From Macrostomum lignano (taxonomy: Eukaryota): a stretch of 26,166 nt of DNA. The DNA lies in NCBI GenBank assembly GCA_002269645.1, contig NIVC01002922.1, positions 1 through 26,166 on the forward strand, read 5' to 3'. Below are positions 1 through 20,387 of the stretch, one piece after another. Under the pieces are notes generated by a model, which was not told where the DNA came from, searched no databases, and was given only the letters and a program-made list of their open reading frames with translations. Both the position numbers and the translations under genes were made by a program. Every line of letters starts with the position of its first letter. Position 1 is the stretch's first letter.

Positions 1-146
1 CCGCTGCTGCAGTCGGGCTAGGCGAGGCTGGACTCCGGTGTTAGCCCGGGCAGCAGTGCCAGCTACCGGCGCTGCTGGCGCTGGCGCGGAGCAAAGAGCG
101 CCGCGCCGTTTTATTTGGCACGGCGGCGGCAACGTTTTGAGAAACA
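1..146 (-). CDS. Possible partial exon running off the left window edge (product unknown)
   Basis: GC-rich block ending abruptly at ~140. The minus frame is open to base 1 (VFLKTLPPPCQIKRRGALCSAPAPAAPVAGTAARANTGVQPRLARLQQR), with a candidate acceptor cttcag| at 148-147. A +strand frame (2..159) is also open, so the strand is uncertain. Confidence 0.25.
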
Positions 147-633
147 CTGAAGCGTGTTGAAGCGGTTAACACTGGATTTTAGTGTACATACGAGCGTATC
201 ATATAGTCATGGCTTGAAATAGTAACAAAAATCGTTACAATGCACACATGTATCACTCATTAACAGCATCGGTTTATTGAACGTTAAATGCATGAATAAA
301 TGTGCAGTGCATGCATGTACGCGCGCGGTTAAAAATCAGCATAGACTACTACACTTTAATCTGAATTAAACGGAACTTTAATGAACGTACAGTTAGTCTA
401 GCGGTGAAGGTTATTCCGTCTATCCTACCAGCCAAGAGATAAGAGACACACCCCTTGGTGATTTGGGATGAATATACTTATAATCATTAAATTGTGTTCG
501 GTCTTAACGATCCATGCAGTGTCCAGACCGCTGCACATTGTTGTTGTCGGTGTGCATGAGTCTTCTCTAGTGCCCTTTAAGGCGTTAAGGCTGAACTATA
601 TGTGCTACAATTCATGTTATTGAACAGATGAAA

Positions 634-717
634 GCTAGCCTAGACGTGAACAGACTGAACTGCTAATGCAGCGACGTGGGTTCGAATCATAAGAGTGTAA
701 TTTTTTTATTTAAAGCT
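634..717 (+). mobile_element. Degenerate tRNA-derived SINE-like head / tRNA pseudogene remnant
   Basis: A-box-like TAGCCTAGACG (636-646), anticodon-arm-like ACTGCTAAT, and B-box GGTTCGAATC (679-688) followed by a T-run. No complete cloverleaf. Confidence 0.3.
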
Positions 718-756
718 TTTTAATGTCCAGAAAACTTAATAGAACTTAATGTGAAA

Positions 757-878
757 AATAAAAGAAGCGTCATGTAAAACATACGAGAAGTGAACCTCAC
801 ACTTCGTAAAAAAAGTGTCATGTGACAAATAAAAGGAGCGTCATGTAGACATACTGTAAAATAAGCGTCATGTAAAAA
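757..878. repeat. Short dispersed direct repeats (aagcgtcatgta core, 3-4 copies)
   Basis: gcgtcatgta at ~767, ~838 and ~866, and a variant gtgtcatgtg at ~815. Confidence 0.6.
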
Positions 879-907
879 TGTGGGATGTGAGGGCTCACTG
901 GGGGATC

Positions 908-997
908 GCTAAGATATCAAAGCTGAGATGTCAAGGCTTACGGGGGGGGAATTGCTGAGATGTCAAGGCTTACGGGGGGAATTGCTGAGATGTCAAG
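908..997. repeat. 30-32 bp tandem repeat GCTGAGATGTCAAGGCTTAC(G)6-8AATT, ~2.5 copies
   Basis: Units at 922-953 and 954-983, a partial unit at 984-997, and a degenerate copy at 908-921. Confidence 0.85.
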
Positions 998-1451
998 TCA
1001 AATTGCCTTGCATATTCAAAACTTTATTAGTTGAGTACCTTCATTGTCATTCGATGAAAGTTCTATAGTGCGGAAATTTCCAAATCACGCCATCCTGCAG
1101 CGGCACCCTTTAGCTGCCAGCTACTTACTTGTTGTGCAGGTCGAAGTGGGCTATAGTACTACTGCACTGAAGGAAAATGAGTGCATCAAATTTGCATCCA
1201 ATTAGAGTTTGGATGACACATTGGGGTGGGGTGACACATCCAAAGGGAGCGCATAAAAATGGGGTAAAAGGGGTGCTCAGAAAGGTATTTAAAAGCCGAC
1301 AGCCGCGCCCTGATGCTCAGCAGATAGCTTTCGCAAGCAATAAAAACTGGTTGAAACTTCACTGTTTACCTTGGACAGGCCAGACGGTAAGCATTCTGGT
1401 TTATAACTGTATGAGCTAAATATGCCAAATCTCAAACTTTTTCTCGGAAAC

Positions 1452-1462
1452 TTGTTTTTCAG
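1452..1462 (+). other. 3' splice acceptor just upstream of the VWA-gene start codon
   Basis: ttgtttttcag| lies 16 nt before ATG 1479, which begins a signal peptide. This makes the ORF-track start at 1422 unlikely. Confidence 0.55.
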
Positions 1463-1478
1463 AAAGCAAATCTTCCCG

Positions 1479-3102
1479 ATGGTCCGCTGGGTCCCAATCC
1501 TCGTACTGCTGTGCGCCATCCTGCACGCTATGCGGCCCGTGACCGCGGCTGTGGACCAAACTCTGCAGCCGAAAGCTAAAGGGGCCGACGTGGTCCGAGC
1601 CACAGTTCGCAAGATCCGCAACAGCTGCATCTTTCCCAACGACTTAGGATTTCTATTGCGCGTCGCATATGTGGATTCGAAATTCGGCCTCAACGCCAAC
1701 ACGTTTCGTTCCGACGCTGATGGTTTTGGCAAAGGCATCTGGCAGTTGGACAAGATCGGCTTCGACGACACCAAACTCGGAAGCAGTACAAAAAGAAACT
1801 TGGTGAAGGAGAAGTTCGGAATTGACTGGACAACTATGACATACGCATCCGCTAACATGAACGTGCCGCTCTACAACGCTCTTGCTGCGCGACTGCTGCT
1901 CTCTCGAAAACCGGAGGCGATTCCATCTGGCATTGAAGCGCAGGTCGACTATTGGAAGACCTATTACAACAGTGGCGCTGGCAAAGGCTCTGTAGATAAA
2001 TTTATCAACGACGTCAAAAGCATACAGCCTTGCAGTACCGTTGGTGCCGACCTGCTATTCATCCTGGACGCTAGCGGCAGCATCGGATCCAGCAACTTTC
2101 AGCTCATGAAGCAGGTGCTGATTGCAGTTGCTAATAAATTATCGATTGGTCCCGCGGCTACGCAGGTGGCTGTGATCACGTTTTCCAGCCGAATAAATGA
2201 GACGATCGAATTTGGCCAACATTCAACACTGAGCTCTTTGACTTCGGCCATTCAAGCGCTGTCATACGTAGGCGGAGGCACGTACACAAACCTGGCATTG
2301 GATCTCGTAGGATCCACGTTCCAGTCTGCTAGACCTCTGAAGGAAGGCTTTCCCCGGCTGCTTATCGTGCTGACAGACGGTGGATCGAGTGACCGTGAAG
2401 CCACTCGCCTGGCCGCGAACAGACTTAATGCGTACAGCTGGCTTGAGCGCTACGCCGTTGGCATGGGATCGGGCGTAAATAAGGATGAACTGGAAACCAT
2501 TGCGTCATGCTCGCACGTTTATATTATACAATCTGTCAGCGCTATCACCGGCCTGACGGACGATCTTTACGAGCTCGCCTGCCAATCGTCGGTTGCGCTG
2601 CCTACGGACAATGCCGGCTTCGCAACCATGTCTGGAACGCTCCCACCGGGCACGCCTCGGAATGTGCGCGACACGGCGGTCTCTAGCGCTATCGGAAGAA
2701 CCTACGCTCTGCAAGTGATTTCCGGTCGAGCTAATCTCTACGTGTCCCTCGGCATGGAGAACCGAGCTCCGCTGTCAATGACTACTCAGCGGAGGCGACG
2801 CCAAGCCGATTGGAGTCGTGTTTGTCAGCTCCGCAGACCTGGCAGCCTCGTCCGCTCCGCTGAGCAGGCGCAAACGTGAGCTGTCCAGCAGCAGCAGCAG
2901 CAGCAGCTCCAGTACCGTTCTGTACCTGTCGATTGTACCCGAAGAAGACAGCGGGTCGGTGATGTACACGCTCGAAGCTCGCGATGGCGACACTCGCTCG
3001 CTTTATCAGAATTCGATCGCCGGCGGGCCAACATTGCTGCACTGGCCGAAGCTGGCTCTGCTCGCGGCCATGGCGATTGGCGCGATGGCGCTGTTTGATT
3101 GA
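1479..3102 (+). CDS. Secreted/GPI-anchored protein: signal peptide + lysozyme-like (lytic transglycosylase-like) domain + VWA domain + beta-sandwich (PPC-like); two apparent frameshifts near 2761 and 2790-2800
   Basis: Signal peptide MVRWVPILVLLCAILHAMRPVTAA. Lysozyme-like motifs AYVDS (1665-1679), GIWQ (1734-1745) and YWKTYYN (1950-1970). VWA (~2046-2580) with MIDAS DASGS (2067-2081), GGTYT and LTDG. The C-terminus continues in other frames (PSSAVNDYS, then GDAKPIGVVFVSS...RRKR...GGPTLLHWPKLALLAAMAIGAMALFD*) and ends in a GPI-type hydrophobic tail. About 540 aa if repaired. Confidence 0.85.
2886..2910 (+). repeat. (CAG/AGC)n trinucleotide run encoding poly-Ser
   Basis: cagcagcagcagcagcagcagc, read as AGC (Ser) in the C-terminal frame. 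Confidence 0.85.
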
Positions 3103-4330
3103 GTCGCTTCAACTGGAAAGTGACAAGTGACGCTGTTTATACTTTAACTTTAATATTCCAGAAAAATTAGCCACACGTACTTTTATCGCAAACTAACACT
3201 AAGCTTGTTATTCAGATGAAAACTTAGCAACAGAACTAACAAAAAACTAACACAAGTGCCCGTATTTTCTCATAGCTGCGACGACAGCCGACCCGCAGCC
3301 AGCCAGAAAGAGCAGAAGACATGCCCATTTTCCTCTGACTAAATTTTTCATTATATATATTTTTTTTCAAAATTCTCCACGAACTCTAAAACAAATATTT
3401 GCTTTCGGTTTCTAACATTTACTTTTCCAAATTTTTTAACACTGCTTTACGAATCTTATTAAAACAAAGCGAACGCAGAAAATATTTAAACTTTATTTTT
3501 TTATTGACGCAAAAATTAAACTAAGCAAAAATGTACTGCACCTAATTTTTCATATTTAAAAAGAAACAATGAATAAATATATGAATGAATGTATTTTGGG
3601 ATTAGAAAAGTATTGCACCTTACCAAATAATGCTTTTTATAAATATCGGGAATCAACGGAAATAGACGCACTCGTGCACTTTTACACGCGTGAGCAAAAA
3701 GAAAAATGACTAACCCTCACTATGCAGGAACAAAAGCTCAAATTATCATGTACCTTACATACTCGTACATGTATACATATTGCTGTGCTTAAATTATTTT
3801 AACAGCATATGGACAATCATCTCCAATGCAAGTCCTACATGAAGGTATTAAAAAATGCCAACTGGTAAACACACAATACTAATTACTTTCGAAACATATC
3901 GGCAATAATAACTATGTTCCTTTCTGCAGTACTGCACTTCACTTAGATGCAGGGAATGAAATTCGGAAATCGCTGACAAGAAAACTTCTGTACAGTGCGA
4001 CAGGAAAATATCTACTTTCGATACATATCGTCATTTACCTATGTTAATTCTACACCCACGAGTAGGTCTTAACTGCTACATATACATACGATGTAATTTA
4101 GCTTACAATGGCCGTCCGGAAAATCAATCCAAAATAGGAGCTACAACTACTGTCTGAAAATTTCCAGAATAAACAATTTCGATACATGTCGGAGAGCAAT
4201 AAAAATCGCCCCAATTTTATACTAGATGCTCACACACGCAATAGGTCCTGAAAATCAGACAGCAAAGTTGACTAACCGCCGTCAGAACAAAATCCCTCCG
4301 GCAACAAATAAAAGTCGCCACTCCCTACAT

Positions 4331-4543
4331 CAGGGGCCGCGAAGCCTCTCTAAGACCCTTGGGTCCTTTGAAACTTCGCAATAGCAATCCGGCCTGCTGA
4401 AGGTTTGTGTCACTTCTCAGCTCTCTTCCCTCTAATATCCTCTCTCTTATCTCTTCCCTCCCCTCTCTCTCCCACTCTGGCCAGCAGTCATGCGCCAGAT
4501 TCTCTATCTGGCCCTTGAGGTACAGAAAGTTTGCCGACCCCTG
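4331..4543 (-). mobile_element. Non-autonomous hAT/Charlie-type MITE (MER58-like ends), ~213 bp
   Basis: Imperfect TIRs CAGGGGCCGCGAAGCC (4331-) and CAGGGGTCGGCAAACT (reverse complement, -4543). Subterminal AAGGGCCAGATA and GGCCGGATT motifs resemble recalled hAT-Charlie MITEs. Degenerate 8-bp TSD with central TA: ccctacat (4323-4330) / ccctaaac (4544-4551). Confidence 0.7.
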
Positions 4544-4545
4544 CC

Positions 4546-7500
4546 CTAAACGCACGCGTAGGTCCTGGGCGCAACGCAGATAATTTGACTGTCCTCCGCC
4601 ATTCGGTCCAGCAGGCGGCGCAGCCCGGCCTCCGTCAGGCCCGGGTAGCAGCCGCGCCGCTCCCTCCGCAGCCGGCCCAGCAAGGCCAGCTCACTGACTC
4701 CGCCGCCGCTGCCCGTAGGAGCCGCCGCCGCCGCCATCGACGCCGATGCTCCATCTCCTCCTGTTGAAGCGTCTCGCAGATGGCGCAGCGTCGCCACAAT
4801 GTCCGCCCGAAGTCTCGAGTCGGCCTCGCACAGCTGGTACTGCTGGCGGCCAGTGTCCTCGCATAGCCAGGCCCGCAGCTGGCCGGATGCGACCAGCGGA
4901 TCCAGCAGCCCCGACTTGATCGCCTGCTTGGTGCCAATCGACGACAGCCAGTTGGCGCTGAGCAGCAGATCCGGCAGAGTGAACTGGTGCAACCGGTGCG
5001 CGCGCAGGTGCTCAACCAGGCGCTCCTGAGACTGAGTCTCCTGGGAGATTGTGTTTTCGTTATTGAAACTGACTTTAAATCAGTTAGAGTTGCTTGTTTG
5101 GCGATAAATTAAAATAGAAAACTGAGAATCCGAATTAGGGCTTCGACGTGTTATGAATTTCTGTACACTAAAGCCTAACCTCCTCTAACCTCAACACCCA
5201 GCTTATTTCTGTGTTTCATCAGAGAATACACTTACTGTGTTTGTTACATTTTAATGTCGAAAAAGTTGCATAATAATGCCCGATACATACGGTACAGCCG
5301 GGGCGTCGCCACAAAGGGAAAGGGGACATGTCCATGTCTTCATGTCTTCAGGACGCCTAAATGAGTGCCTGCGGCGCCTAAATGAGTGCCTGCGGCGCCA
5401 AAATGAGTGCCTGCGGCGCCTAAATGAGTGCCTGCGGCGCCTAAATGAGTGCCTGCGGCGCCAAAATGAGTGCCTACTGTGCCAAAATGAGTGCCTGCGG
5501 CGCCAAAATGAGTGCTTGCGGCGCTAAAATGAGTGCCTGCGGCGCCAAAATGAGTGCTTGCGGCGCTAAAATGAGTGCCTGCGGCGCCAAAATGAGTGCC
5601 TGCGGCGCCTAAATGAGTGACTGCGGCGCCTAAATGAGTGTTTGCGGCGCCAAAATGAGTGCCTGCGGCGCTAAAATGAGTGCCTGCGGCGCCTAAATGA
5701 GTGTCTGCGGCGCCAAAATGAGTGCCTGCGGCGCTAAAATGAGTGCCTGCGGCGCCTAAATGAGTGACTGCGGCGCCTAAATGAGTGTCTGCGGCGCCAA
5801 AATGAGTGCCTGCGGCGCCTAAATGAGTGTCTGCGGCGCCAAAATGAGTGCCTGCGGCGCTAAAATGAGTGCCTGCGGCGCCTAAATGAGTGCTAACAAC
5901 ACCAATTCCCAAAATAATGTAGGAATTTTTTCATGTAGAATTCCTGACATTGTCCCCCCATCATAAAAGCCGTTTTGATGGTTCCAGGCTAATTAGTAAA
6001 TGTGACGAGGTTTTGTTCGAAATTTAAATTCATATTGGCTTCTCCGTTGCGTTAATTTCGGCCCTGTAATCTGATTTGATAGCCTGTCTACTAACGGTAG
6101 TATATACCGGTATGGAGATACGCAGCTATACATGTGAGCGAAGCGGCATCACAACGTTTTCGCATCTCTTTCACTCTGTAGTAACGGAAAAAGACTTAGG
6201 TTCGATTTTATTGAGAAGCCAATAATGCTGCAAGTATTGTATAAGCGAATGCAACTCAGCGGCAAACGCGTTCCACTTTCGCGCATCTCTTCGTCCAATT
6301 CTCTCCTATTAGGGCTCGCCCCGAAGGCACAGAGCGTGTGTGCTGAATAGCCTTAGCGTTGGCGTTGTGACAGGATGCCCGCAACCCTCCTGCGAGCATT
6401 CATGTACATGTATATTTATCTACAGGCCGAGTTCTCACTCACCCGGTGCCTGGCCGCCTCAGCCAGGCGAACCTGCCTGCTCAGCCCGTCGGGCAGCCGC
6501 AGCCGCAGGATGTAGCCAAACTGGCAGCTCGGATCGGCCAGCTGGGCCAGCCTGCTCAGCCTGAGCAGCTCCTCGTCAGGCTCGGCCATCCGATGATAGC
6601 CGCAGCTGAGCTCCCGGCTGCCGCGGAATTCCCGCACCAGGCCCCTGGCGTGCAGGCTGAGGCCCGGCCTGGGCGCCGGCTGGGCCGCCTCGGCCGCCTG
6701 CGTCTCCGCTAGCAGCAGCTCAGCCAGGCTGTCCTCAGCACCCAGCGTTGTCAGGCCGGCCAGCGCGGCTGTTGCGACGGCGCTGCTATCGCCGTAGGAA
6801 CTGCCAGTCGTGGTTGCTATGGCAACCGCGTCGAGCTGCCTGGCCGCTCGGAAACTGTGCAGCGACGGCGGCGGCGGCTGCCGCGGCTTCCACAGGGTGC
6901 AGCCGATTGAGCCGGTACCGTCGTCAACTGCAAGGAGGAAGATGGGACGACTGCACTCAGATACTGGCAGTTTGGGAAGGGGGGCAGGGTATGATTCAGA
7001 TAGGGCTGATGGCCAACTCCTAATCCTCAGTGAGTCGCTACGATCACATGACCCTTTAGTGAGTCGCTACGATCACATGACCCTTTAGTGAGTCGCTACG
7101 ATCACATGACACTTTAGTGAGTCGCTACGATCACATGACACTTCAGTGAGTCGCACCTACCCTCAATATTTCAGTGAACCGCAACTATGCCAAGATGAAT
7201 CAGGGAAGTCGCCACTATCCCCTGACACTAGTGGGCTGCCACTATTCCGGGACTCAAAAAGCAGCAACTACACCAACTACTAACAAGTAGCATAACTACG
7301 AGTAGCAAAAAAGTATCTTTTACGGTAAATCCAAATTGAACGTGAGACAGGGCAGAGGTGTGCACTATTATTGCTAATTATTAAAACTCAGCTGTGCGGG
7401 TGTGGCACAAAAACTTCGCTCACATCTGGTTTGGCCCACCGCCCCCCCCCCTAGTCCGCGCGAACTCACCCAGGCACTTGAAGTAACCGTCAAACTCCGT

Positions 7501-9123
7501 AGCCGAACGGCACAGCCCGATGACGTCAAACTTTCTGACCAGCTTTCTGCCTACTCGATATGAGACTCCGCCGTCTATAGCGGGTAGATGGAGAGATGGA
7601 AAGAGATAGGAATTACATAATGAGTAAACAATTTTCTCTTAAAGCAAGCGGAGCTTTTAAAAAGAGCGCGGCGGAGGAAGAGACTGATATTTGGAGGGCA
7701 AGAAAACTTTTTGGAGAAGTACTTTTAACTTTCTAAGCTAGAGATAGTCAACAATAAGTAGCTGTTTGATAAGCTTGCTGAGCAGGTGAGATAGAGTGAC
7801 AGCGGCGACAGGTAAAAGACTGGTAGATGGCGTAGAAGAGTAAGTGCGACAGGTAGAAGGTGTACAAGAGCAAGGAAGACAGGTAGAGGGCACAGAAGAG
7901 AGAGGGAGACAGGTAGAAGGCACAGAAGAGAGAGGGAGACAGGTAGATGACGCAGAAGAGAGAGGGAGACAGGTAGATGGTACAGAAGAGAGAGGGAGAC
8001 AGGTAGATGGCACAGAAGAGAGAGGGAGACAGGTAGATGACGCAGAAGAGAGAGAGGGAGCCAGGTAGAAGGCACAGAAGAGAGAGGGAGACAGGTAGAG
8101 GGCACAAAAGAGAGGGAGACAGGTAGATGGCACAGAAGAGAGAGGGAGACAGGTAGATGGCACAGAAGAGAGAGGGAGACAGGTAGAGGGCACAGAAGAG
8201 AGAGGGAGACAGGTAGAGGGTACAGAAGAGAGAGGGAGACAGGTAGAGGGCACAGAAGAGAGAGGGAGACAGGTAGATGGCACAGAAGAGAGAGGGAGAC
8301 AGGTAGAGGGTACAGAAGAGAGAGGGAGACAGGTAGATGGCACAGAAGAGAGAGGGAGACAGGTAGAGGGCACAGAAGAGAGAGGGAGACAGGTAGATGG
8401 CACAGAAGAGAGAGGGAGACAGGTAGATGGCACAGAAGAGAGAGGGAGACAGGTAGAGGGCACAGAAGAGAGAGGGAGACAGGTAGATGGCACAGAAGAG
8501 AGAGGGAGACAGGTAGAGGGCACAGAAGAGAGAGGGAGACAGGTAGATGGTACAGAAAGGAGAGGGAGACAGGTAGAGGGTACCGAAGAGAGAGGGAGAC
8601 AGGTAGAGGGTACAGAAGAGAGAGGGAGACAGGTAGATGGCGCAGAAGAGAGGGAGACAGGTAGAGGGTACAGAAGAGAGAGGGAGACAGGTAGATGGCG
8701 CAGAAGAGAGGAAGACAGGTAGAGGGCACAGAAGAGAGAGGGAGACAAGTAAATGACGCAGAAGAGAGAGGGAGCCAGGTACATGGCGTAGAAGAGAGAG
8801 GGAGCCATGTAGAGGGCTTAGAAGAGACTGCTTGTCACGCCGGCTGCGGGTCAACTTTCGCCTCGATTTTCTATAGAGCCTAAAGCCCACACTGAAAGCT
8901 AAAAAGCGAAGAGACAGACGGATAGATGGCGCATAGAAACTAAAAAAAACGAGCTAAAAAGTCTATAATGCCATTAGGCACGCCGCTAGCACTCACCGAG
9001 AGTGGACACAGCAGGTGCACTCAAGATGGCGCCAATGCAGACTGGCAGGTGCTGGCAGCAGGCTGGATCCAGCTGGGCCGCCTGCTGCTCCGCTGTAGGC
9101 TGGCCGTCATCGCCCAGCTGCAT
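4546..9123 (-). CDS. STN1: CST complex subunit STN1 (OBFC1), 4 exons, ~403 aa
   Basis: Exons 9123-8997, 7574-7470, 6927-6443 and 5040-4546, all with GT-AG and compatible phases (1,1,0). The spliced protein has LDP..., KFDVIGLC, VDDGTGSIGCTLWK and LHARGLVREFRGSREL (STN1 OB fold), and a C-terminal winged-helix PGLTEAGLRRLLDRMAEDSQII matching the recalled human STN1 PGLSEAVLQQVLELLEDQSDIV. Confidence 0.9.
5355..5893. repeat. 21-bp minisatellite (GCCTAAATGAGTGCCTGCGGC), ~25 copies, in STN1 intron 3
   Basis: Direct inspection; variant units gcctaa/gccaaa/gctaaa are interspersed. Confidence 0.95.
7029..7154. repeat. 29-bp tandem repeat (AGTGAGTCGCTACGATCACATGACCCTTT), 4 copies plus a partial, in STN1 intron 2
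   Basis: Units start at 7029, 7058, 7087, 7116 and 7145; degenerate units continue to ~7290. Confidence 0.95.
7807..8828. repeat. 30-bp purine-rich minisatellite (GACAGGTAGATGGCACAGAAGAGAGAGGGA), ~33 copies, in STN1 intron 1
   Basis: Direct inspection; both edges are degenerate. Confidence 0.95.
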
Positions 9124-10655
9124 TATGACAGTGCCGAGCAGGGCTGCAACTATAGGCAACGTAAACTGCCTAAATTCAATACAATCATCAGTATATCTCA
9201 TAATTAGTCTCTACTGAAGTTGTTAGGCTGCGCTACAATGAGGCCCCCAGCTGTGATTCAGCTTGAGTATCTTAAAATTTATCGGTTACTTTCGAAATTG
9301 CGCCACTTGGCTCATTACCGTATAGGAAAGCTCGAATAAATGTGCAAAAAATAAACTTGCAAAGCTCGGTTTGATTTGGTATAATTCAAGGCTGCGAATT
9401 TCCGCTCAGATAACTTATTTGAATCATTCGAATTAATGGACAGATGATGTTCGAAAAAGGCGTGTGTGGACAAATCGACTAAACGATTTCCCTTTTGTGC
9501 CGTCATTTAAGTTTCTTCCATAGACAATGAAGGCGTGGGGTGTAGAGGGATGAGTGAGTGGTTTTTGCCATAGACAGCTTGCGCTGTTGCACGTTTTTGT
9601 GGTGAAGGGAATTAAAAATCAAATAATTTAATTTGAGTTTCAATGGTAAAGACAGGCATTAGTAAAGATCAAATCGTTAGTCAATGGGAAAATCAATGTG
9701 GGACTCGAACAGAAGGTAATCTGCTAAGGTAATGATTAGGTATAGGATAAAACATTATTTTTGAGGGAGCTATTTGTATAGAAATGAAAAAAGCTACCGA
9801 AAAAGACACGTTTATCTCATATCAAACATAGACGTAAAGATTTACGAGATTTACGAGAGTCTTTCAAAGTCTTGAAAGTCTTTAAAGCAATCCAGTTTCC
9901 GTAAGTAATTACGGTTTGTTATAGAATTGAAAGCATAGACGGGTCTCATCCACTGATAAAATTTTACATAATAGAACCAGAAGACAGGCAAAACCTGCTT
10001 CTGAAGTGCGCTCTCAAGAGATTGTGCACGAATAGAGTTTAATCATGCAATTATAGACTTGTCTAATCCTGTCTCAGAGATTGACAGGCAAATCCTAAGT
10101 CTGTCCCTTCTACAAAAACAGCAATTATTGTCTCATTAAACGGCGCAGCGAAGGACAGAAAGAGAGCACAGCCCCGCTTGCGCTTGTTTACCCGCTTTCA
10201 CTGTTGCTGCCCCAGCAATATATGCCCTGCCTGTCGTTATGAAAGCTTATTAGAGCTACAGGCCTGGAGTGTAGCGATAAAACTAAAATCCGTTGGTTGT
10301 CAGCCACGGAGAGAAAAATCTGGGTCGCACAGCAAGAAACCATCGCAGTGGCATTATTAGGCAGGGGCCAGAGGGAGGGGAGGCAGCGAGAAAGCGCTAC
10401 TCTGACCCTCGCTGAGGCTCGCTTGCCAGCTAGTACGAGTAGAGCTGAGCAGACTCGCATTAGCAGCACGATTATGCAGATAAGGAGCACTGCATCAAAA
10501 AACAATGAGTTGTTGCGCTAAATTGTGCTTGTATTAGGCTCGTATAGAGATGCTTAGATGAGTACAGCAAGGGACTTTTATGCTAGAACCGACAACGTTT
10601 AACTAAATCTCAGCTGGTCTTAATTCAACTCATACTTGCAGCATTCCTTGTATAG

Positions 10656-10796
10656 AAAGAGAGACAGACAGACAAGGACCGACCAGAGTGTTTACTGCAT
10701 GGCAAAAGAGTAACCCGAGACCCAGACAAACTGGTCGAAAAAGAAACGAATGTCAGGGGGGCTTGTACGAACTATACTATTCTATTGAACACGAGG
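10656..10796 (+). CDS. Candidate upstream exon of the 11449-12776 gene
   Basis: tatag| acceptor and |gtgaga donor. Open frame ERETDRQGPTRVFTAWQKSNPRPRQTGRKRNECQGGLYELYYSIEHE ends in phase 1, matching the phase-1 acceptor at 11448. No homology support. Confidence 0.25.
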
Positions 10797-11448
10797 GTGA
10801 GAAAAAATCTACCGAAAAGATACAATACTATTGGTTTACGAATAACACACACCCGTCAATTCCTAGAAAGAAAGCTAAGAATCGTAATACATATATAAAC
10901 TTTTTCTGCCAAGGAGTTGAAACAGACAGTCACTAAACTTTCGCAACATCACAGAACACAGAATTGAGATCAGTGCGTTAATTAACCTGGCTTCAACACT
11001 GGAATTCTATCGAATCGGCAAATGACAACGGGTAGGTGAAACGTGTTTACAATGGTCCAACTGCACCAGTGGTCGTTCTGATCTGATAGAATACGATATA
11101 ATTGAAATAGGCCTTACCCACTGCAAGATGGCTAGGTGGTATGCAACAGAACAGCCGTTGCAATAGCGCGGCGCATCCAAAGGCTGCGTACAGTTTTTAC
11201 AGTGCTGAGACTGGGAAGTCGCAACTCCCAGCCTGTATTTATATGAGCTGCTTCTACCGCAGCTCAAATCTGCTATCCTATCACAGCAGAGTAAACTGGA
11301 GCTTAGATTAAGTTGCCACTCGTTCACGGTGGATGCTTTAAGGAATGACAAAAGGCAATTCAGCTTGCATGATAACCATGACAAACTCTGCTTAACAAGT
11401 CCCGATTGCAACAAGACTTAAAAACCTATTTTAACCTTTTAATTGCAG

Positions 11449-12776
11449 AAAGCAGCCAGCGCATATTCCTGACCCAAAGCAGCCGCTCACCATCCGCTGA
11501 GGAGGCGACCACCACGCTGGCTGTGACTCGAACCATGACCACAAGAACAAGCGCCACAACGCCAATGACTACGAGGTCTCGAACGGCAACGGTCGCCGAG
11601 AGTAATGAGCGAATGGCAACGGAGCGTCAGCGCCGAGCTGAGGGCGCGAAACGCCTAGCCAGGCTGGAGCGAGCCAGCAGCGAGTTGGCCACCTACGGCC
11701 GGCGCAGGTTTGAAGCTACAACCGACGAGACAACAGTGCCAGCATCAGCCAGGCAACAAGTCGACGAAATTGGGTCTAAGTGCGGCCTATCGCCATACAC
11801 AACAGTTGTCATGGAGACAGAGACTACGCCGTCGCCGCGCGGTCCAGACAGCGGCGAGAGGCAAGCCGGTCGGATGCGGGCACGTCTAATGAATGAGCTG
11901 AGGCTGCGCCAGCCAGAGCTACCAGTCCGGTTCAGGCACGATCGGACAGCACAAGAGCTGACCCAGGAAGGCTGCCTGACCTCTCGATCTACTCGCATCG
12001 CCGGCGGCTACCCATGGCCAGTGAACTACAAGTACACTCCATTTCCAGAGCCGCGCTTGCAGCGTTGGACTTCGGCCCAGCGACGTCTTACAGCGGAAGC
12101 TATTGCCGCGGCAGAGGAATCGGAGCATGCGAAGGACGCGGGAGCAGACGACAGCATGGCCCAGACTGTGCTAATTGAACTGGCAATTCCGGCGATGTCA
12201 CAGAAATCGCCTTCGCCGACGCATCCGCACGTTGTATTTGATTTGCCAATGGTGACAATGTCGCTGCCGCAGCACCACCCACGCAAAGCAAGCGACAGTC
12301 AGCTGCCGACGACTACGGGCAAATTCACCGGCCTGGCACCGGCGGACAATTCTAGCGTGAAGTGGCAGCGAAGCAAGTCGCAGTCGACGGTGCAGAAGCA
12401 CGCGCCGCACCGATTGCTGTCCGTGTCAACCATTGGCGACGAAGAGCGGTCCAGACGGCAGACCCAGCTGCAGAGACTGGCCCAGGTGTGCAACAGGCTG
12501 AGCAGCCATCGCCAATGCACCAAGGACGGCGCAGCGGAGGCCAGTAAAACGGAGTGCAAGCACAAGACAGATGCTATAGACTATCTAGTGGAGGAAATCG
12601 AGGCGGCCGTGGCCAACGGCGGGCCGCTGTTCCGCACTGGGGCTGAAGAGTCAGACGATCAACTACCGGCACTGGCTTGCCCTGGCTCACTCGCTAAATC
12701 GCGTCAGCACCTGACCCGAAACTGGCTGCGGCAGCACCGCTTCCAAGGAGCTGGACCGTCGGTCATCATTGGCTGA
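11449..12776 (+). CDS. Large terminal exon of an uncharacterised, largely low-complexity/disordered protein (>=413 aa)
   Basis: 1.3-kb GC-rich open frame after the acceptor ttttaattgcag| (11448). First internal ATG at 11535. Thr/Ser/Arg-rich, no recognised domain. Confidence 0.7.
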
Positions 12777-14403
12777 TTCGCGAATCAACCACAAGTCAGT
12801 GTAGCAGCAGTGCGCACGAGCTTACAAAAATTATATTTAGCAGTAGCAAGGCGTCAGCAGCAACCAAGCAATAATGCTCGCTAACGCCTGGTTTGCGCAT
12901 CCATTTGTATAGTACATGCTTATTACTACTGCCTTTTGAGCCGAGCTCTTTAGAACTCGTAAATTTACTAGAAACAAAGCTCCGATCTTTACAGTAGATT
13001 TATGAAGGCATACCAAGCAGTTGTCTTTAATGTTATCCGACTGTCTGCTCGAAAATGTATTCTCGTAATGAATCAAAATGTTGTTTAACTATTAAATTGT
13101 AAAGCTTTGAATGTGGCCTAAGGTACTGCTATATCTCTGCTATACTATTTTTGTGCCCAATATAACACATTAGGTGTGTAGTTCACCAAATCACGATGCA
13201 AAAATCGCGGATTATTGTAAATACATTCATTTAAAACTGCATTAAAATTAATAACATATACACAAACCAATATTCGCACAGGCCATTATGAATTGTTTAT
13301 GCGCCATTTAAAAAAGGAAAATGGAGCAATCCAACAAAATGGTTTAATTTTAAATTTTGCTTCGGCATGCAGCTTCGGAGATGGTCGAGATGCCAATTCT
13401 TCCTCAAAACAGCCAGAAAATTTTTTTGGTACTTTTAACACGACGAGGTTTGGAATTCAAAGCTAGTCTAAGTCATTTGAGTTTTTATTTCTAGGACTCT
13501 TCGGTCGAAAAAATAAAATAGTAAAACAGTAAATAGTATAATAATGGAGTAACTTACTGGATAGCAAAGCTAAGGATTAACAATTTGTTGGCCTAGCATA
13601 CTACTTATGCTACTTACGAGCATAAGTAGAGGGTAAAGAACACAATAAGCTGCCCACGAAACGATTGAGTTACCTACCAATTAGCTAGCTATTAGTGCAG
13701 ATAAATTGTGCTACAGAGAAATGACCCATAACTATTTTATGATATGCAAAATCCTTTACAAAGAAAGTAAATAAATTAAAGTAAACCTTTATTGAAATAA
13801 TCCATGTAGAGAAATTGCCCTTGCGCAAGATTCTATTATTTAAGTTAAAGCAAAACGGCAATAAATAAGTGTTTATGTAACAAACAAATAAAAACAAATA
13901 AGCACAGCAACTGTAAGACTTTGAAGTAATACAAAGCGCTTTATCATTTGAAAAGTGAAAGAAAATGTTGTCGGACAATATTCAATTTCACAATAAGTCA
14001 ATAAAACATAATAGTGCACTCGTGTTTGTCAATTACAAAAACGGCATTACGCAAATAGATAAGTGAGTTGAGTAGTTAATTGAGATCTATCCAGTTACAA
14101 AATTTCCGTGGAGTCACGAGGGATAAATAAATAAACGGTTTACTTTGAACTGTATTAAACAATTTATTGCTGTACTGAGTCGCCAATAATAAAAAAGTTT
14201 CTCTCTCTTTCTTAGTCTGAAAATTCGGGCTGGTCGGTGCAGTAATGCAGTTACGAGCGTAATCGGCACATACTGGACTTTAAGTGAATCCGTCCTTCCT
14301 ATATGCATGTACATGGCGTAGTAGGTTCGGGCCATTAAAACTTTATTTAGCAAATTTTAAATAGCTACGAGTGTACGCAGCCGCGAGTGAGTGAAGCGGT
14401 TAG

Positions 14404-14690
14404 TTTATCGATTTTTTCAACCCTACAGTCCTAGATTTTCTAACCCCGGCTATTGGCTACGCCGCTCTGGCTAGAGGTGGCTGAGGCTTATCGATTTTAT
14501 TATCTGTTTTTTAAACCCCAACCATTAATCTTTTCTAACCTCCGATAGCCGTCATAATGAATGGCTATAGGCTAAGCAGACTTCTAGCCACAACGGCGGC
14601 CTGACTGACTGGGGTAATTGAGGAATATCGATTTTTTTGGTGTTTTCCACCCTAGCCTCTAACCCCGATAACCATGCTAGGCTTATCGGT
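14404..14690. repeat. Degenerate ~85-140 bp repeat units (TATCGATTTTT ... CTAACCCCG)
   Basis: tatcgatttt at ~14406, 14490 and 14626; ctaacc(c/t)cg at 14440, 14535 and 14659; ggcttatcg at 14485 and 14680. Confidence 0.45.
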
Positions 14691-15845
14691 TAACAGACGT
14701 GAACTTTTAATCGTTTTGTTATTAACTACGCTACCCCACTTCACGAAGTGTGTTGATAATACAAGACACGGAATCAAGTTATTTTGTACAACTCCTAGGA
14801 CAGGGCAGGGCCCATACATTATAAAGTAACAAGCTGTAGGTGTAGATTATTAAACTGACAAAAACGATACTGAATTAAAATATAAAGGATACGTTAGTTG
14901 AGAGCAATAAACGCCTGATTAAAATGTCAGGTAAGTGCATTTGCAAAGATTAACGACAGGACAGGGAGATAAAATATTGAAATACACTCAGTACTTGTGA
15001 TTGAATGAACAAACTGTAAAGATGCATAGTTGCGAACTATAAGCAACTGTCAAAACTCTGATGAATGCAGAAATACGAGCAAATACGTACAACTTGGACT
15101 GTCATGCTGATAAGAAAATTGTCATTGAGAAACTGCACACAGAAACACGTGCATGGACTTCCGTCGCTCCCGCCTCAACTCAAAATGCAAGCAAGATCAA
15201 TTTTAATAAAACTCCCTAAACACCAGTATTGATTATTTATTGATAGGTACAAATATATAAATAGATTTTTGGTCTACTAAAAAACTTGAAAACAGCACAA
15301 TAAAGATGTGACAATGTGGACTCTCACCGAGTAGTGCATAGTTGACACACTGCTTGCAGATATAAGACGTTTATAAAAAAATAAACATAAAGCAGTGGAA
15401 AAATCAAGGATTTAGCTTTATATATGTATTATCGTAAGGAATCAAAGAAAATAAACAGGATTGTGGGCGTTGAGTGAGCAACCAGTGGTTTAGTACAACT
15501 TAATACAAAAATATAAGTGATTTGTTTGAAAATAAATCGGCTATATGATGCCTAAATAGTGACAAAAATACGTGTCATATGTGATTATAATAAACACAGG
15601 TAAAGATTAACAAACAGCATGTACAGGTTACAGATACAATGTGACATGCAGAGTTTAGATATGATATATAAATGCTCAGAAGCACACAAAAACAATCTTA
15701 TCGAAAGTTTAGATTATTTTAACTTGGCTGACAGTGATTGTGACAGGAAAAAGTTGCGGGCAGGAAGAAGGGCTATTATATACATGCGCACAAAAAAGTA
15801 CACAGCTGGTCATGCAATCGAGACTAAGATAAGCGGCGTCACGAA

Positions 15846-18800
15846 TCACTTAACAGCCCAAGAGCAGGTGGGATTAATCTTGAGCAGGTAATAAATCTGT
15901 GTGTTACCGGGCAGCCGGCGCTCATTGATGTTGCCGCCAACCTCGTACAGGGAGGTGGTGGAGGGGTCGCAGCCCAGCCCGTGAAGAACTTCGGCAGCGG
16001 TGGTGGACGGCGAGATTGGAACCAGCTGGCTGCGGTTGGTGCTGGCCTGGTGAACACTGATGCTTACCTTGGTGAGAGGGGGTGAAGTGGTCAGGTATGG
16101 GAAGTTGCTTGATTAGCGCCGAAGTGTGCAGGAGTGGGCAAGCGGCCTACTTTTACTAAAGGCTGTTAGTGAATTTGGGAGGCTACTGAAGGATCTGAGA
16201 GGCTACTAAAATCTGACGGGCTGTTGAAGGATCTGATGAACAGATAAGTTTAGATCTATTTATAGATCAAAAAGGGGTCACTAAAAACAGGGGATTAGAT
16301 TACTGAATTAGGATCAGATAAGACAGCTGATGTATTGGATGGGGCAGCTGAAGTATCGGATGAGACAGCTGAAGTATCGGATGGGACAGCTGAAGTATCG
16401 GATGGGACAGCTGAAGTATCGGAAGGGACAGCTGGAGTATTGGATGGGACAGCTGAAGTATCGGAAGGGACAGCTGGAGTATCGGATGGGACAGCTGAAG
16501 TATCGGAGGGACAGCTGAAGTATCGGATGGGACAGCTGAAGTATCGGATGGGACAGCTGAAGTATCGGAGGGACAGCTGAAGTATCGGATGGGACAGCTG
16601 AAGTATCGGATGGGACAGCTGAAGTATCGGATGGGACAGCTGAAGTATCGGATGGACAGCTGAAGTATCGGATGGGACAGCTGAAGTATCGGATGGACAG
16701 CTGAAGTATCGGATGGGACAGCTGAAGTATCGGATGGACAGCTGAAGTATCGGAGGGACAGCTGAAGTATCGGATGGACAGCTGAAGTATCGGATGGGAC
16801 AGCTGAAGTATCGGATGGGACAGCTGAAGTATCGGATGGGACAGCTGAAGTATCGGATGGGACAGCTGAAGTATCGGAGGGACAGCTGAAGTATCGGATG
16901 GACAGCTGAAGTATCGGATGGGACAGCTGAAGTATCGGATGGGACAGCTGAAGTATCGGATGGACAGCTGAAGTATCGGATGGGACAGCTGAAGTATCGG
17001 ATGGGACAACATGCGACAACTCACCTGCTGGTTTTGGATCGATGTCGCAGAAGTTGAGCTGTTAAACACCGGACTGTCAACAACTGCAGCTGCCAGAGAG
17101 GATACGGGCGTTTTTGCTGCAGCAGCAGCTGCCTGCTTGCGCAACAGTTTGGCCGCCTTCTTGGCGCTGCCGCCGCCGCTGGTGCTGGCAAGCTGGCTTA
17201 ATTTATTAGGCGGCTCGCGCAACTGTTTAATTAGAAACTCTGGCACGCTCCACACTATGGTGCGATATTTAATGAGCATCTCAACTAATCCGATTAGATT
17301 GCCAGTCTCAGCCAACAGATTGGCGCCTTCTCGTTGCGCTTTCTTCGAAGATTGAATGGCGAATAAATTTGGCGCCATGACGGTTGCTATGGCTTTCAGA
17401 TTCATTCGATTGTGCTTGTGCTGCTCGATTACCTGACAGAGGGTGAATTGTGTGTGGGAGATCGAATATCATACTGATTAAGCTGAAGCTCAACTTACAC
17501 AGGACTTCGCGCCGATGGGCTAGGGAGGAGCGGGTAAGATAGAGAATAGCTGGGGCAGGGAGTAGGGAGAGAATAGCTGGGGCAGGGGGTAAGGGAGAGA
17601 ATAGCTGGGGCAGGGGTAAGGGAGAGAATAGCTGGGGCAGGGGTAAGGAAGAGAATAGCTGGGGCAGGGGTAAGGGAGAGAATAGCTGGGGCAGGGGTAA
17701 GGGAGAGAATAGCTGGGGCAGGGGGTAAGGGAGAGAATAGCTGGGGCAGGGGGTAAGGGAGAGAATAGCTGGGGCAGGGGGTAAGGGAGAGAATAGCTGG
17801 GGCAGGGGGTAAGGGAGAGAAAACAGGCAAAGAAAACTTGGGGTGGTTGAATATAGAGACCCAATTTCAAATCACGATATGTGGAAAAAAACTCTACACT
17901 AAACTTAGGGTTGAAAAAAAACAATCAAGAAATGCGCAAATCATTTTCATGAGACAGACGCGCACCTTAGCAAACAAGTCGACCATCAGGCGCAGCGTGC
18001 TACAATTAGGCGTTGGCAACAGCAGCACAAGCAGATTAAGGCCTAACAATCTGTCCATATCGTGCTGAATACAGCGCAGTTTTAAATAGAAATCTGCATA
18101 GGCTGTTGAAGTCAGCGGCTCGGGCAGCTCACGCAGGAAGGCCTTCAACAGGCCGGCTAGGTCGTGCCAGTCAGCGGTCAGACGCTGATGCTGCTGCTCG
18201 GTGTCGGCCATCAGCGCCTTGATGCCGGCTGACTCGGCCCGCTCCCTGGCCTGGCGGATTCTCTGCAGCGAGCCGGGGACGCGGAACAGGCCTTCGGTGC
18301 GCAGCGCTTCCGGCCGTTCAAGCTGACCGACAATCCAGCGGACCAGCTGAGGCACCCCGTCGCTACTGGAGCTGCCGCTCTCCTTAGCAACCAGCTGGTC
18401 AAGCGGCACGCCGAAACAGCTGGCAACAACAGAGCGCCGCGAAGCCGACCGGCCGCGTGACGACGGCTTCCTAAACGCCGGATCGCAGTCGTATTTATCG
18501 AACAGGGCGGCCAGCTCCAGGTGGGCCAGAGCTCGAATCTGCTGCCTATCTGGCTCGCTGAAATCGAATATGCTGGCATTGCCCAGGCGGTTGTTGGGCA
18601 GTACGAAGGTCGGGTATTGCTCAAGGCCCGACGTGGCAACAGGTGTAGCACCGCTGCTGCTTACAGATGGAGCCTGTGAGGAGAGGACAGAGAAAAACAG
18701 TGATACGAGTAGTAGCGTGTGGTCCGTGTGGAATTAAAACAATTTTTGAAGGCCGATCGATTGTAATTTGTCAAATTGAAATAATAAAAGATGACAATAA

Positions 18801-19524
18801 AATAAGCCCCTGATCCTCTGGCAAGGCGGCCAGGTGTGACAGACAGCGACACGGTCTGTATGATAATTACCTGATCTGCGTGTAGTGGCGTTGCCCCGGC
18901 AACAGGCGCTGCAGTTCGTCCCGTCACTTGCAGCAGATCGTCCTCCGAGTCGCCGGTGTCCTCCGATCCGGTGTCCGCGTCGGCAACGCCCGAAGTTGCC
19001 GCTGCTGTCCCGGCGACCCCAGCCTCGCTGAACAGCTGTCTAACATCCTGCCTAGAGGCCAGGCCTCGTTTAGCTTTCAAAGTAGCGATCCGCTTCATCA
19101 CGGCATTGAGCTGCTTCCTGCTCATTCTTTGATAGTGCGCGTCTAGTGCCGAATCTGCGGCGCTTAAATCGGCCCCAGCTTGATGATCGCCGATGGCGTT
19201 TGACGATGCCGTCGACGCTGACTCGGTCGACGTTGACATTGGCGACGATTGCAATAGTCGGCGAGCGATGTCGGCCAGCAGCGGTGAGCCGGTCTGTTCG
19301 AGCCAGTCCGCCGCGCTCTCGGCTTCGTCCGGGGTGCGCGAGTCCAGCTCATCATCGTCAGACTGGTAGCCGGCACCGTTGCGCCAGCTGCGGACGGCCG
19401 CAAGCTCGGCCGCGAACTCGCCGCTGCTACTGCTCGGCTCGCTGCACAGGCCGCTGTCGGCGCCGCCGCCGCCGCCGCCGCCGTTTTGGCTGCCGTTTTT
19501 GCCCAGTTGCTGTGCCTTGGCAGC
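15846..19524 (-). CDS. ARHGAP18: Rho GTPase-activating protein, ARHGAP18/28/40 (Conundrum) family, 4 exons, ~663 aa
   Basis: Exons 19524-18871, 18673-17966, 17432-17025 and 16067-15846, all phase 0. Family motifs: PDEAESAADWLEQTG, RKQLNAVMKRIATL..DVRQLF, LAHLELAALFD, FGVPLDQL, arginine finger EGLFRVPG, NRMNLKAIATVMAPNLF and C-terminal LYEVGGNINERRL...INPTCSWAVK. Start codon unresolved (see findings). The symbol is family-level; the exact paralogue cannot be assigned. Confidence 0.88.
16322..17007. repeat. 20/21-bp minisatellite (GGGACAGCTGAAGTATCGGAT), ~33 copies, in the last RhoGAP intron
   Basis: Direct inspection. Confidence 0.95.
17532..17820. repeat. 28/29-bp G-rich minisatellite (GGGGTAAGGGAGAGAATAGCTGGGGCAG), ~10 copies, in RhoGAP intron 2
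   Basis: Direct inspection. Confidence 0.95.
19462..19483 (-). repeat. (GGC)n encoding poly-Gly in RhoGAP exon 1
   Basis: gccgccgcc run on the + strand; reads NGGGGGGGA in the RhoGAP frame. Confidence 0.8.
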
Positions 19525-19590
19525 CTATAGGCGGGGGGGAGTTAACGAGCATAGTAGCTGGGCCTGTGCCTGAACTGAACGTTAAAAAGT

Positions 19591-19839
19591 AATCTACGCT
19601 ACATATCGGTAGCTGATCTAGTCTGGGTAAGACTCTACCACCCGTCAATTCTTCTAAATCTCTCTTTGAGAACTCCTCCTGAACTCTAAAAGCAATTTAC
19701 GCTACATGTCGGTAGTGGAGCTATTCGGGAAAACTACTTCGTACTATATCCTGATGTCTATCTAGTCAAGGCAGCACTCTTAAGACACTAATTACTAAAG
19801 GATTAAATTACTTAAACAATTTACGCTACATATCGGTAG
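19591..19839. repeat. Three spaced copies of a 22-bp motif AATTTACGCTACATATCGGTAG
   Basis: Copies at 19591-19612, 19694-19715 and 19818-19839; copies 1 and 2 each have one mismatch. Confidence 0.8.
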
Positions 19840-20387
19840 TCAATAATCACATTATATAATAGTTAGACTTTATTTATCAACATAAAATAGGTATATGATC
19901 ATATGATTATACGTAATATATTGACATACAAAGACCGAAAAGAAGATGCCTCATAATACAAGACCAACTTATACCAAATTACAGTATATAAGTAGCCGCA
20001 GCTGGCAGATGCTTGCTTGAAGAGTTTAAAAATGGTGCAGACGAAGATTAAGAGACTCTGTTTTTATATTATAAAGTTTGGATCCCGATAGCTTTAATAA
20101 AACTCAATACAAGTCAGGCGAATTGAAAGCTACTCGAGTATATATATGCTACTAACAATAGCAGTAAATTCCGCGGATCGCATTGAAAAACATTTATATT
20201 AGGCGGCAAAAATAATCTATAACTAACAGAATAAAACCAGTTATATTGAGATTATTGGATATAAGCTGTGAAAATCATAAATTCCATTCCATTAGTAACG
20301 ACAACCAAATTTTAATAATACTGCGAACATCAGAACGGAGATAGAACACAAATATTACTGGAGGTCCTGGGTTCGATTTCTCTCCCC

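Follow-up and report, generated by a model that had tools for sequence, protein, structure and literature searches.

How does a domain of phage and bacterial kind come to stand at the head of an animal cell-surface gene, and does that gene still encode a working protein? The question is raised by contig NIVC01002922.1 (assembly GCA_002269645.1) of Macrostomum lignano, a marine free-living flatworm; its forward strand was analysed from position 1 to 26,166, and this whole stretch of 26,166 nucleotides is called the window below. The gene lies at 1479-3102 on the plus strand, and an original prediction, made from the sequence alone, had described it as an intronless coding sequence in which a lysozyme-like module is fused to a VWA domain between a signal peptide and a glycosylphosphatidylinositol (GPI)-type tail. 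Our preferred reading, to which we give a probability of roughly 0.62, is that the gene encodes a secreted, probably GPI-tethered M. lignano protein with lysozyme-like and VWA domains, and that the two breaks in its reading frame are assembly errors.

A phage-family domain joined to a VWA domain

The phage and bacterial family to which the original prediction had likened the segment exists. Among the PHROGs families, the N-terminal domain of the gene matched phrog_3108, which is labelled 'unknown function', with E=9.9e-17 (residues 36-158 against profile positions 31-154 of 160); bona fide phage members reach 1e-25 to 1e-53 against the same profile. Searches by tblastn recovered 23 phage records, from phages of Klebsiella, Salmonella, Pseudomonas, Vibrio, Shewanella, Pseudoalteromonas, and Komagataeibacter together with a 636-kb uncultured phage, and pattern scans found 147 relatives in the genomes of bacterial species of many phyla and at least 438 on IMG/VR contigs. 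On the animal side, an exhaustive profile search returned 2,878 clusters (50% identity) at E<=1e-3 and 453 at E<=1e-30.

The window domain shares with the phage proteins of phrog_3108—phiKO2 Gp54, which reads ...IPATREARAAYWKKYYNTSAGKGTPQDYI, S6a_00066 of Klebsiella phage VLCpiS6a, and the members from Salmonella phage PMBT28, Pseudomonas phage PSA28, and Shewanella phage 1/44—sequence homology (24-38% identity), a set of motifs, a domain length of ~150-165 amino acids, and a predicted fold. Whereas those phage members are standalone, cytoplasmic proteins encoded in lysis cassettes, the window domain is accompanied by a signal peptide, a VWA domain, and a hydrophobic tail. The motif set common to phage and animal members, E-[ST]...G-x-G-[ILV]-x-Q-x-D...R...I-P...YWK-x-[YW]-N-[ST]-x-x-G-x-G-T, is complete in the window except for its Glu, which is replaced by Asp. 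Among the aligned domains, the GIWQ columns hold G in 102/102, I in 99/102, W in 100/102, and Q in 76/102, W136 is invariant, Y140 is present in 100/102, and P107, L112, A113, A114, and R115 are invariant or nearly so.

The features of the gene are given below, with two homologues for reference: P0196, an intact 539-amino-acid protein on a 1.8-kb Logan contig, and P0062, encoded on metagenome contig L001.

1479-1547, plus strand: likely start ATG and signal peptide, MVRWVPILVLLCAILHAMRPVTA; the P0062/L001 and P0196 alignments begin at 1479/1497
1548-2030, plus strand: lysozyme-superfamily-like domain of the phrog_3108 (phiKO2 Gp54-like) family, 160 residues, directly after the signal peptide
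1671-1679, plus strand: V-D-S at a helix end; Asp (GAT, 1674-1676) in place of the near-invariant Glu of the family
1734-1745, plus strand: G-I-W-Q, counterpart of SLT motif II (GLMQ; GIWQ in MltD) by HHalign pairing
1866-1883, plus strand: P-L-Y-N-A-L, placed on the AYNxG of SLT by HHalign with low confidence
1941-2012, plus strand: signature Q-x-x-Y-W-K-x-Y-Y-N-[ST]-x-x-G-x-G-[ST]-x-x-x-F-I, common to phage members in animal/phage alignments; includes YYNSG at 1962-1976
2049-2558, plus strand: VWA domain (PF00092) with the metal-ion-dependent adhesion site (MIDAS): DASGS at 2067-2081, the Thr of GGGTYT, and the Asp of LTDGGS
2600-2990, plus strand: C-terminal domain, fold unassigned, conserved with L001 and P0196 by tblastn and split by two frame shifts
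2762-2763, plus strand: frame break 1, CC against an implied CCC (AAC CCG, Asn-Pro), frame +3 to +2
2803-2804, plus strand: frame break 2, AA against an implied AAA (CCA AAG CCG, Pro-Lys-Pro), frame +2 to +1
2866-2877, plus strand: furin-type R-R-K-R in the corrected frame, overlapping the uncorrected stop at 2877-2879
3052-3102, plus strand: hydrophobic C-terminal stretch LALLAAMAIGAMALF-D and stop, preceded by the small residues NSIAGG; a GPI-signal-like tail

That the gene is an animal one and joins this domain to a VWA domain with a MIDAS is borne out: PF00092 matched amino acids 210-379 of the uncorrected open reading frame (ORF) with E=3.1e-35 (122.4 bits against a gathering cut-off of 23.8), and the DASGS...T...D of the MIDAS can be read directly in the sequence. 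That uncorrected ORF spans 1422-2879 on the plus strand (485 amino acids, stop codon 2877-2879); starting at ATG 1422, it carries 19 extra upstream residues that none of the homologues supports, and ATG 1479 is the likelier start because no homologue aligns upstream of it. AVDQT, the N-terminus of the mature protein, is kept in P0062 and in two further homologues (P0004 and P0012). In its canonical VWA domain with a MIDAS, the gene resembles matrix and adhesion proteins of the collagen VI/XXI-like and matrilin-like kinds; unlike the collagen-like ones it is without collagen repeats, places a lysozyme-like domain before the VWA, and ends in a short GPI-like tail.

The C-terminal domain, once corrected for the frame breaks, had no Pfam match. 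Inside it, immediately ahead of a stretch rich in Ser and Asn, lies the furin-type basic site, which recurs at the aligned position in both reference homologues (RRKR in L001 at ~11398-11409, RTKR in P0196 at ~466-469); its conservation in all three suggests processing by a convertase. The predicted signal peptide and GPI-type tail are likewise both present, but the hydrophobic stretch of the tail (3052-3099) lies, as assembled, in a frame other than that of the 485-amino-acid ORF, so that the signal peptide and the hydrophobic tail with its small residues share one frame only after two single-base corrections. The corrected protein is ~541 amino acids long and has a GPI-signal-like end, NSIAGG...LALLAAMAIGAMALFD; comparable hydrophobic tails close P0196 and the L001 protein.

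Frame breaks and the state of this copy

With P0196, the gene shares 64% identity over 424 residues, and homology to this intact protein passes through three frames of the window:

P0196 residues 9-432: window 1497-2762, frame +3
P0196 residues 433-446: window 2762-2803, frame +2
P0196 residues 450-533: window 2812-3075, frame +1

Two bases are therefore missing from the assembled coding sequence. In the short frame +2 segment, P0196 residues 433-446 (PSSAINDYSAKAKP) are matched by PSSAVNDYSAEATP in the window, at 79% identity, and L001 reads MENPSESLYDF at the region of the first break. Three-frame translations place the serine run, the remainder of the C-terminal domain, and the tail outside the frame of the 485-amino-acid ORF. 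An intron was considered as the cause of the frame change and ruled out, since the 42 nt in between, read in the third frame, also show homology to P0196. The coding sequence is collinear with intact P0196 and hence free of introns, as had been proposed; it is, at the same time, not intact, as it carries two frame breaks.

Both breaks are contractions of implied 3-nt homopolymers, from CCC to CC and from AAA to AA. The P0062 gene on L001 is also broken twice, at ~11005 (after GMGSGVDD in the VWA domain) and at ~11460 (before SVSFQLDSHDGD). These positions differ from those in the window and are consistent with the indel errors of long-read assemblies. Given the short-homopolymer contractions and the breaks that L001 carries elsewhere, the two breaks in the window are most likely homopolymer errors of a long-read assembly rather than signs of pseudogenisation, although they may be real.

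The second peculiarity of this copy is its Asp. At this column Glu is found in 100/102 aligned relatives and Asp only in the window; across all domain instances Glu is kept in 268/278 (96%), and the only other Asp occurs in Acanthaster P0123, a protein with two domains of which one carries it. Both of the closest relatives, P0196 and P0062, retain Glu. An active hydrolase is doubtful for the window copy because this near-invariant Glu is replaced, and, judged from sequence, the domain is more likely to be a weakened enzyme or a glycan-binding pseudo-enzyme.

The foremost alternative to our reading holds that the gene is a decaying paralogue of a functional lysozyme-like/VWA gene—that its breaks are real, that the change from Glu to Asp reflects relaxed constraint, and that no functional protein is made. 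We regard this as unlikely while granting it real weight. Several observations count in its favour and weigh against a working gene: the ORF is broken as assembled, with its stop at 2879 and its tail in another frame; besides lacking the putative catalytic Glu of its family, the domain is unusual at two more positions, V133 (A133V) and F60 (Y60F); and the protein of the VWA gene is absent from a collection of 5.8 billion proteins in which that of the neighbouring gene occurs. A broken ORF and an absent protein together mean that the gene may be unexpressed or a pseudogene. The M. lignano genome is, moreover, partly duplicated, so redundant copies are expected. An exact look-up found the 485-amino-acid ORF on no contig on record, and the VWA gene appears to be unannotated. 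On the other side, both breaks are single-base contractions of short homopolymers, of a type typical of long-read consensus, and elsewhere the 1.6 kb are open in the correct frames, keep their 64% identity to P0196, and preserve the MIDAS, the signal peptide, the furin-type site, and the tail. The breaks at other places in the L001 homologue suggest that a technical origin is possible, and Acanthaster P0123, which carries Asp in one domain, is an annotated protein.

A probable lysozyme-like fold and the place of the phage gene

Our preferred reading also holds that the N-terminal domain is lysozyme-like, and this rests on three lines: predicted structure, profile alignment, and the position of the phage gene. 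An AlphaFold2 (AF2) model built from the 102-sequence alignment reached a mean confidence score (pLDDT) of 91.7; in it, residues 35-44 form a helix with VDS at its end, and a short beta-hairpin contains GIWQ. Foldseek against BFVD returned uncharacterised phage proteins first (probability 1.00, TM-score (TM) 0.66-0.82, E=8.7e-7 to 5.7e-4), and, once the members of the family itself were passed, proteins of the LT_GEWL, SLT, muramidase, and destabilase kinds. Against PDB, 16 of the 22 neighbours belong to the lysozyme superfamily, including every one with a probability of at least 0.03, each being individually weak: the GH23 chitinase of Ralstonia (3w6f/3w6b) and the phiKZ gp144 transglycosylase lead, and GH19 proteins, i-type and g-type lysozymes, muramidases, and destabilase also appear.

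Profile alignment points the same way. With HHalign, a broad profile of animal, phage, and bacterial members was aligned to a small alignment of E. coli SLT domains (Slt70 and MltC/D/E/F) with a probability of 78.7% and P=1.7e-5 over 132 columns, compared with P=0.36 for the reversed control; an animal-only profile gave a weaker alignment, and both alignments pair vES with the catalytic qES and GIWQ with GLMQ. The family resembles the SLT/GH23 enzymes (PF01464; Slt70, MltC/D/E/F, phiKZ gp144) and the goose-type lysozymes in a predicted helical, probably lysozyme-like fold with Glu-Ser/Thr at a helix end followed by a G-[LI]-[MW]-Q hairpin, and by analogy may share with SLT/GH23 enzymes a role as phage cell-wall lysins. 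It differs from them in that AYNxG is not clearly conserved and in its own signature in the C-terminal half, QAxYWKxYYNT...G.GT..FI. The Glu-Ser/Thr at the C-terminal end of the helix, a feature of SLT, is found in the family overall; the window has Asp-Ser there (1674-1679). All three of the lysozyme-like motifs first noticed in the gene are where they were said to be, but VDS departs from the V-E-S/T of the family, and the proposed equivalence of YYNSG with AYNxG found no support; HHalign sets AYNxG, with low confidence, on PLYNAL instead.

The third line is the neighbourhood of the phage gene. In Klebsiella phage VLCpiS6a, a LydA-type holin gene and then an Rz-like spanin gene come after the phrog_3108 member, and the only annotated 'endolysin' of that phage is a dATP/dGTP diphosphohydrolase (PF18909, PF04447). 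In phiKO2, Gp54 is preceded by Gp53, a protein with three hydrophobic segments and a basic C-terminus. For the related phage PMBT28, a holin has been reported, and an endolysin is not named among the functions assigned to its ORFs (PMC6025938). In a set of 77 bacterial loci, the neighbour of the gene is a small membrane protein at 31/71 upstream and 26/61 downstream positions. Where neighbours matched a named PHROG, it was mostly that of a holin (9), an Rz-like spanin (7), a lipoprotein (5), or a Q antiterminator (3). Because it adjoins holins and spanins, the phage gene is probably an unrecognised endolysin.

The annotated gene of VLCpiS6a was considered as another endolysin for that phage and rejected, being a dATP/dGTP diphosphohydrolase. 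This gene, S6a_00032 (L013, 13577-14461), is labelled 'endolysin; inhibits RNA polymerase' and adjoins a gene for a PurZ-like adenylosuccinate synthetase; its label is derived from PHROG and is a misannotation in 2-aminoadenine phages.

An alternative reading is that the domain is a helical module with a superficial likeness to lysozymes, that the phage family consists of lysis regulators, virion proteins, or host-interaction proteins, and that the animal domain is a non-catalytic binder. Much on this side of the balance also counts against our own interpretation. The window domain had no Pfam match even at E<=10 (PF01464 included) and no NCBIfam or PDB sequence match, phage members had no Pfam match at E<=1, and a PDB search with the family profile gave nothing meaningful; two PDB rows at E=0.2-0.75 are noise. 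Foldseek found no significant match to solved lysozymes (E>=0.4, TM 0.17-0.46), the animal-only HHalign covered just 35 columns (P=0.007, probability 5.6%), and the third SLT motif is aligned unconvincingly, with AYNxG falling at low confidence on PLYNAL and not on YYNSG. The PHROG itself is labelled as of unknown function, some phage copies—that of Vibrio phage 1.293.O, for example—stand away from recognisable lysis genes, and the literature found holds no experimental test of any family member. Set against this are the predominance of the lysozyme superfamily among the PDB neighbours and its recurrence behind the family's own members in the viral list, the contrast between the broad HHalign and its reversed control with exactly the two catalytic-site motifs aligned, the 96% conservation of one acidic residue at the helix end, the recurrent holin and spanin neighbours, and the co-occurrence of CBM14 with the domain in animals. 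With these in view, we consider a superficial likeness improbable.

The domain can accordingly be called lysozyme-superfamily-like with moderate confidence: Foldseek, HHalign, and the endolysin position converge, each of them moderate and none decisive alone. The fold claimed in the original prediction, that of a glycan hydrolase, survives at this strength, while hydrolytic activity of the M. lignano copy is put in doubt by its Asp. Lysozyme-like fold matches of moderate strength (Foldseek and HHalign) and phage and prokaryotic homologues (phrog_3108 searches), on whose presence that prediction had staked itself, were both found. We read the family as a divergent branch of the lysozyme/SLT (GH23-like) superfamily that would serve as a phage endolysin. 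Most likely, the phage and prophage members of ~150-165 amino acids, standing in the endolysin position between holin and spanin, would cleave the glycan strands of peptidoglycan, with the conserved Glu at the helix end as the putative general acid. Literature searches found no description of the family, which, with no Pfam or PDB entry and no paper found, seems to be undescribed.

Animal members, their origin, and their possible role

The M. lignano gene is one of many in animals. Named members come from the corals Montipora, Orbicella, Porites, Oculina, and Desmophyllum, the annelid Owenia, the echinoderms Acanthaster and Amphiura, the molluscs Haliotis and Tegillarca, and the mites Medioppia and Halotydeus; all source-named eukaryotic matches are animal, with no search aimed at non-animal eukaryotes. 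Most animal members are secreted and 160-230 amino acids long. Among 55 longer representatives, 29 carry VWA and nine the chitin-binding CBM14, and a few have EGF, MAM, or LDLa. The statement that similar VWA-bearing proteins of other invertebrates are known only as 'uncharacterised' was accurate: labels are either 'uncharacterized' or derived from the VWA domain ('collagen alpha-6(VI) chain-like' in one case, 'Collagen alpha-1(XXI) chain' in another). In Amphiura, the domain (7-190) is directly followed by VWA (193-364), as in the window.

Further observations concern individual carriers. On an animal-type contig with fn3 and EGF_CA neighbours (L004/L005, 6001-7949), the homologue P0029 is 50% identical and a separate VWA ORF lies ~700 nt downstream; because of this separation, an intron between the domains is probable in that species, unlike in M. 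lignano. Bacterial carriers of the family include genomes of Endozoicomonas (L023, L085), which are symbionts of marine invertebrates. The megaphage record LR756504 has three matching places, and the uncultured phages L009/L099 are 636 kb and 348 kb long.

The phylogeny called for in the original prediction was computed by neighbor joining (92 sequences, midpoint-rooted, limited sampling). In this tree, the domains from animals are monophyletic (bootstrap 84/100). They join the megaphage copy of LR756504 and P0010, a protein from a metagenome (96/100), and stand apart from every other phage or bacterial sequence; no non-animal sequence lies closer to them than the megaphage copy. Within the animals, the window domain is placed with P0196 and P0062 (84/100). 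Its median identity is 39% with animal domains, compared with 34-38% for the megaphage pair and 19-30% for the remainder. Because the animals form one clade spanning Cnidaria and Bilateria, any transfer would have been ancient and not lineage-specific. The suggestion of a domesticated, possibly horizontally acquired module is thus upheld as far as phage and bacterial homology goes, but not as a recent event or one peculiar to this lineage. The pattern would fit a single ancient origin of the animal clade followed by domain shuffling.

That bacterial or phage DNA was mis-assembled into an animal scaffold, by contamination or as a chimera, is a reading we reject as exceedingly improbable: the closest named non-animal relatives are indeed phages and the first 7 kb of the P0062 contig are bacterial, but the flanks are of eukaryote type on both sides (minisatellites and the multi-exon RhoGAP/PH gene of M. 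lignano), the architecture of signal peptide, VWA, furin-type site, and GPI-like tail is eukaryotic, the domain falls within the animal clade (84/100) and not with prokaryotic sequences, family members occur in chromosome-scale animal assemblies, and the chimera is L001 itself.

L001 (ENA metagenome contig 'contig_23547', 15903 nt) is bacterial over its first ~7.2 kb, with DctM, UxuA, Fur, and TctA/TctC, and its GC content of 64-67% in 1-7200 drops to 37-52% in the eukaryote-like 7200-15903; it is this change of GC and gene type at the junction that marks it as a chimera. In the window, the neighbouring minus-strand gene (17894-26123) is multi-exon, with a PH exon at 20388-21128 and a RhoGAP exon at 17894-18409, and its product shares 99% identity with a protein that clusters, at the 90% level, with BOX15_Mlig000081g10 [Macrostomum lignano]. 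A homology search with this neighbour gave only the protein of the window itself, and it was the cluster member that supplied the species name. Seven large minisatellite arrays (5354-5893, 7817-8827, 16322-17008, 17532-17821, 22253-22661, 24127-24572, and 25215-25576), with units of 16-33 nt in 10-34 copies, give rise to spurious ORFs of great length on either strand and make the GC/AT skew locally strong. An ORF of 456 amino acids at 11406-12776 on the plus strand is rich in Thr, Ser, and Arg and has no Pfam match.

Animals are known to have acquired cell-wall-degrading proteins: GH25 muramidases have been transferred to animals, and the Dae amidases of ticks and mites derive from Tae amidases. 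Bivalves have co-opted bacteriophage lysozyme genes (PMC5303276). Like these lysozymes of phage or bacterial derivation, the present family would be a cell-wall-degrading one encoded as secreted animal proteins; unlike them, it is a different, undescribed family with a far broader animal range and with fusions to VWA, CBM14, EGF, MAM, and LDLa.

On our preferred reading, the M. lignano protein would begin with a signal peptide, continue through a lysozyme-like domain, a VWA domain, and a C-terminal domain that contains the furin-type site, and close with a hydrophobic tail; it would be secreted by way of its signal peptide and tethered to the cell surface by the GPI-type tail, and cleavage at the convertase site could release the ectodomain. 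The N-terminal groove may bind polymers of N-acetylglucosamine (GlcNAc) or N-acetylmuramic acid (MurNAc), peptidoglycan or chitin—both are possible, given the CBM14 fusions of its relatives and a GH23 chitinase as the closest structure—while the MIDAS of the VWA domain would bind a protein ligand in a metal-dependent manner. Other animal members, predicted to be secreted, occur singly or as tandem domains, and fusion to VWA or CBM14 is frequent among them; they are probably active on GlcNAc-containing glycans, peptidoglycan and/or chitin, since Glu is kept in 96% of domains. A role in immunity, mucus, or interaction with the microbiome is a conjecture.

A wider proposal, which we offer tentatively and would not back at even odds, is that the family supplies the missing endolysin of several phage groups (PMBT28-like 2-aminoadenine phages, phiKO2-like telomere phages, and many marine phages among them) and at the same time represents ancient, metazoan-wide secreted glycan-cleaving or glycan-sensing modules. 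These might go back to a single acquisition, near the base of the animals, from a (jumbo-)phage-like source and might since have been wired repeatedly to VWA adhesion and chitin-binding domains as an extracellular antibacterial or matrix-remodelling system; the M. lignano copy would then be a crippled, surface-tethered glycan receptor.

For phage biology, a muralytic family would give a function to a 'hypothetical' gene present in hundreds of viral contigs and, if the proposal holds, would fill the empty endolysin slot of phages used in therapy and biocontrol research (such as PMBT28-type phages of Klebsiella, Salmonella, and Pseudomonas). The analysis also exposes a propagated misannotation, the gene called 'endolysin; inhibits RNA polymerase' being a dATP/dGTP diphosphohydrolase. 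For animals, it would add a new invertebrate lysozyme-like family to the c-, g-, i-, and phage-type lysozymes, with ~450 clusters matched strongly and a range that takes in Cnidaria, Annelida, Mollusca, Echinodermata, Acari, and Platyhelminthes, and the recurrent fusion to VWA and chitin-binding domains points to a putative extracellular defence or matrix system. With its naturally occurring change from Glu to Asp, the M. lignano locus itself offers a way to ask whether domains of this kind turn into glycan receptors. If true, the relationship would represent a further, and unusually ancient and widespread, sharing of a gene family between the lysis machinery of phages and the secretomes of animals.

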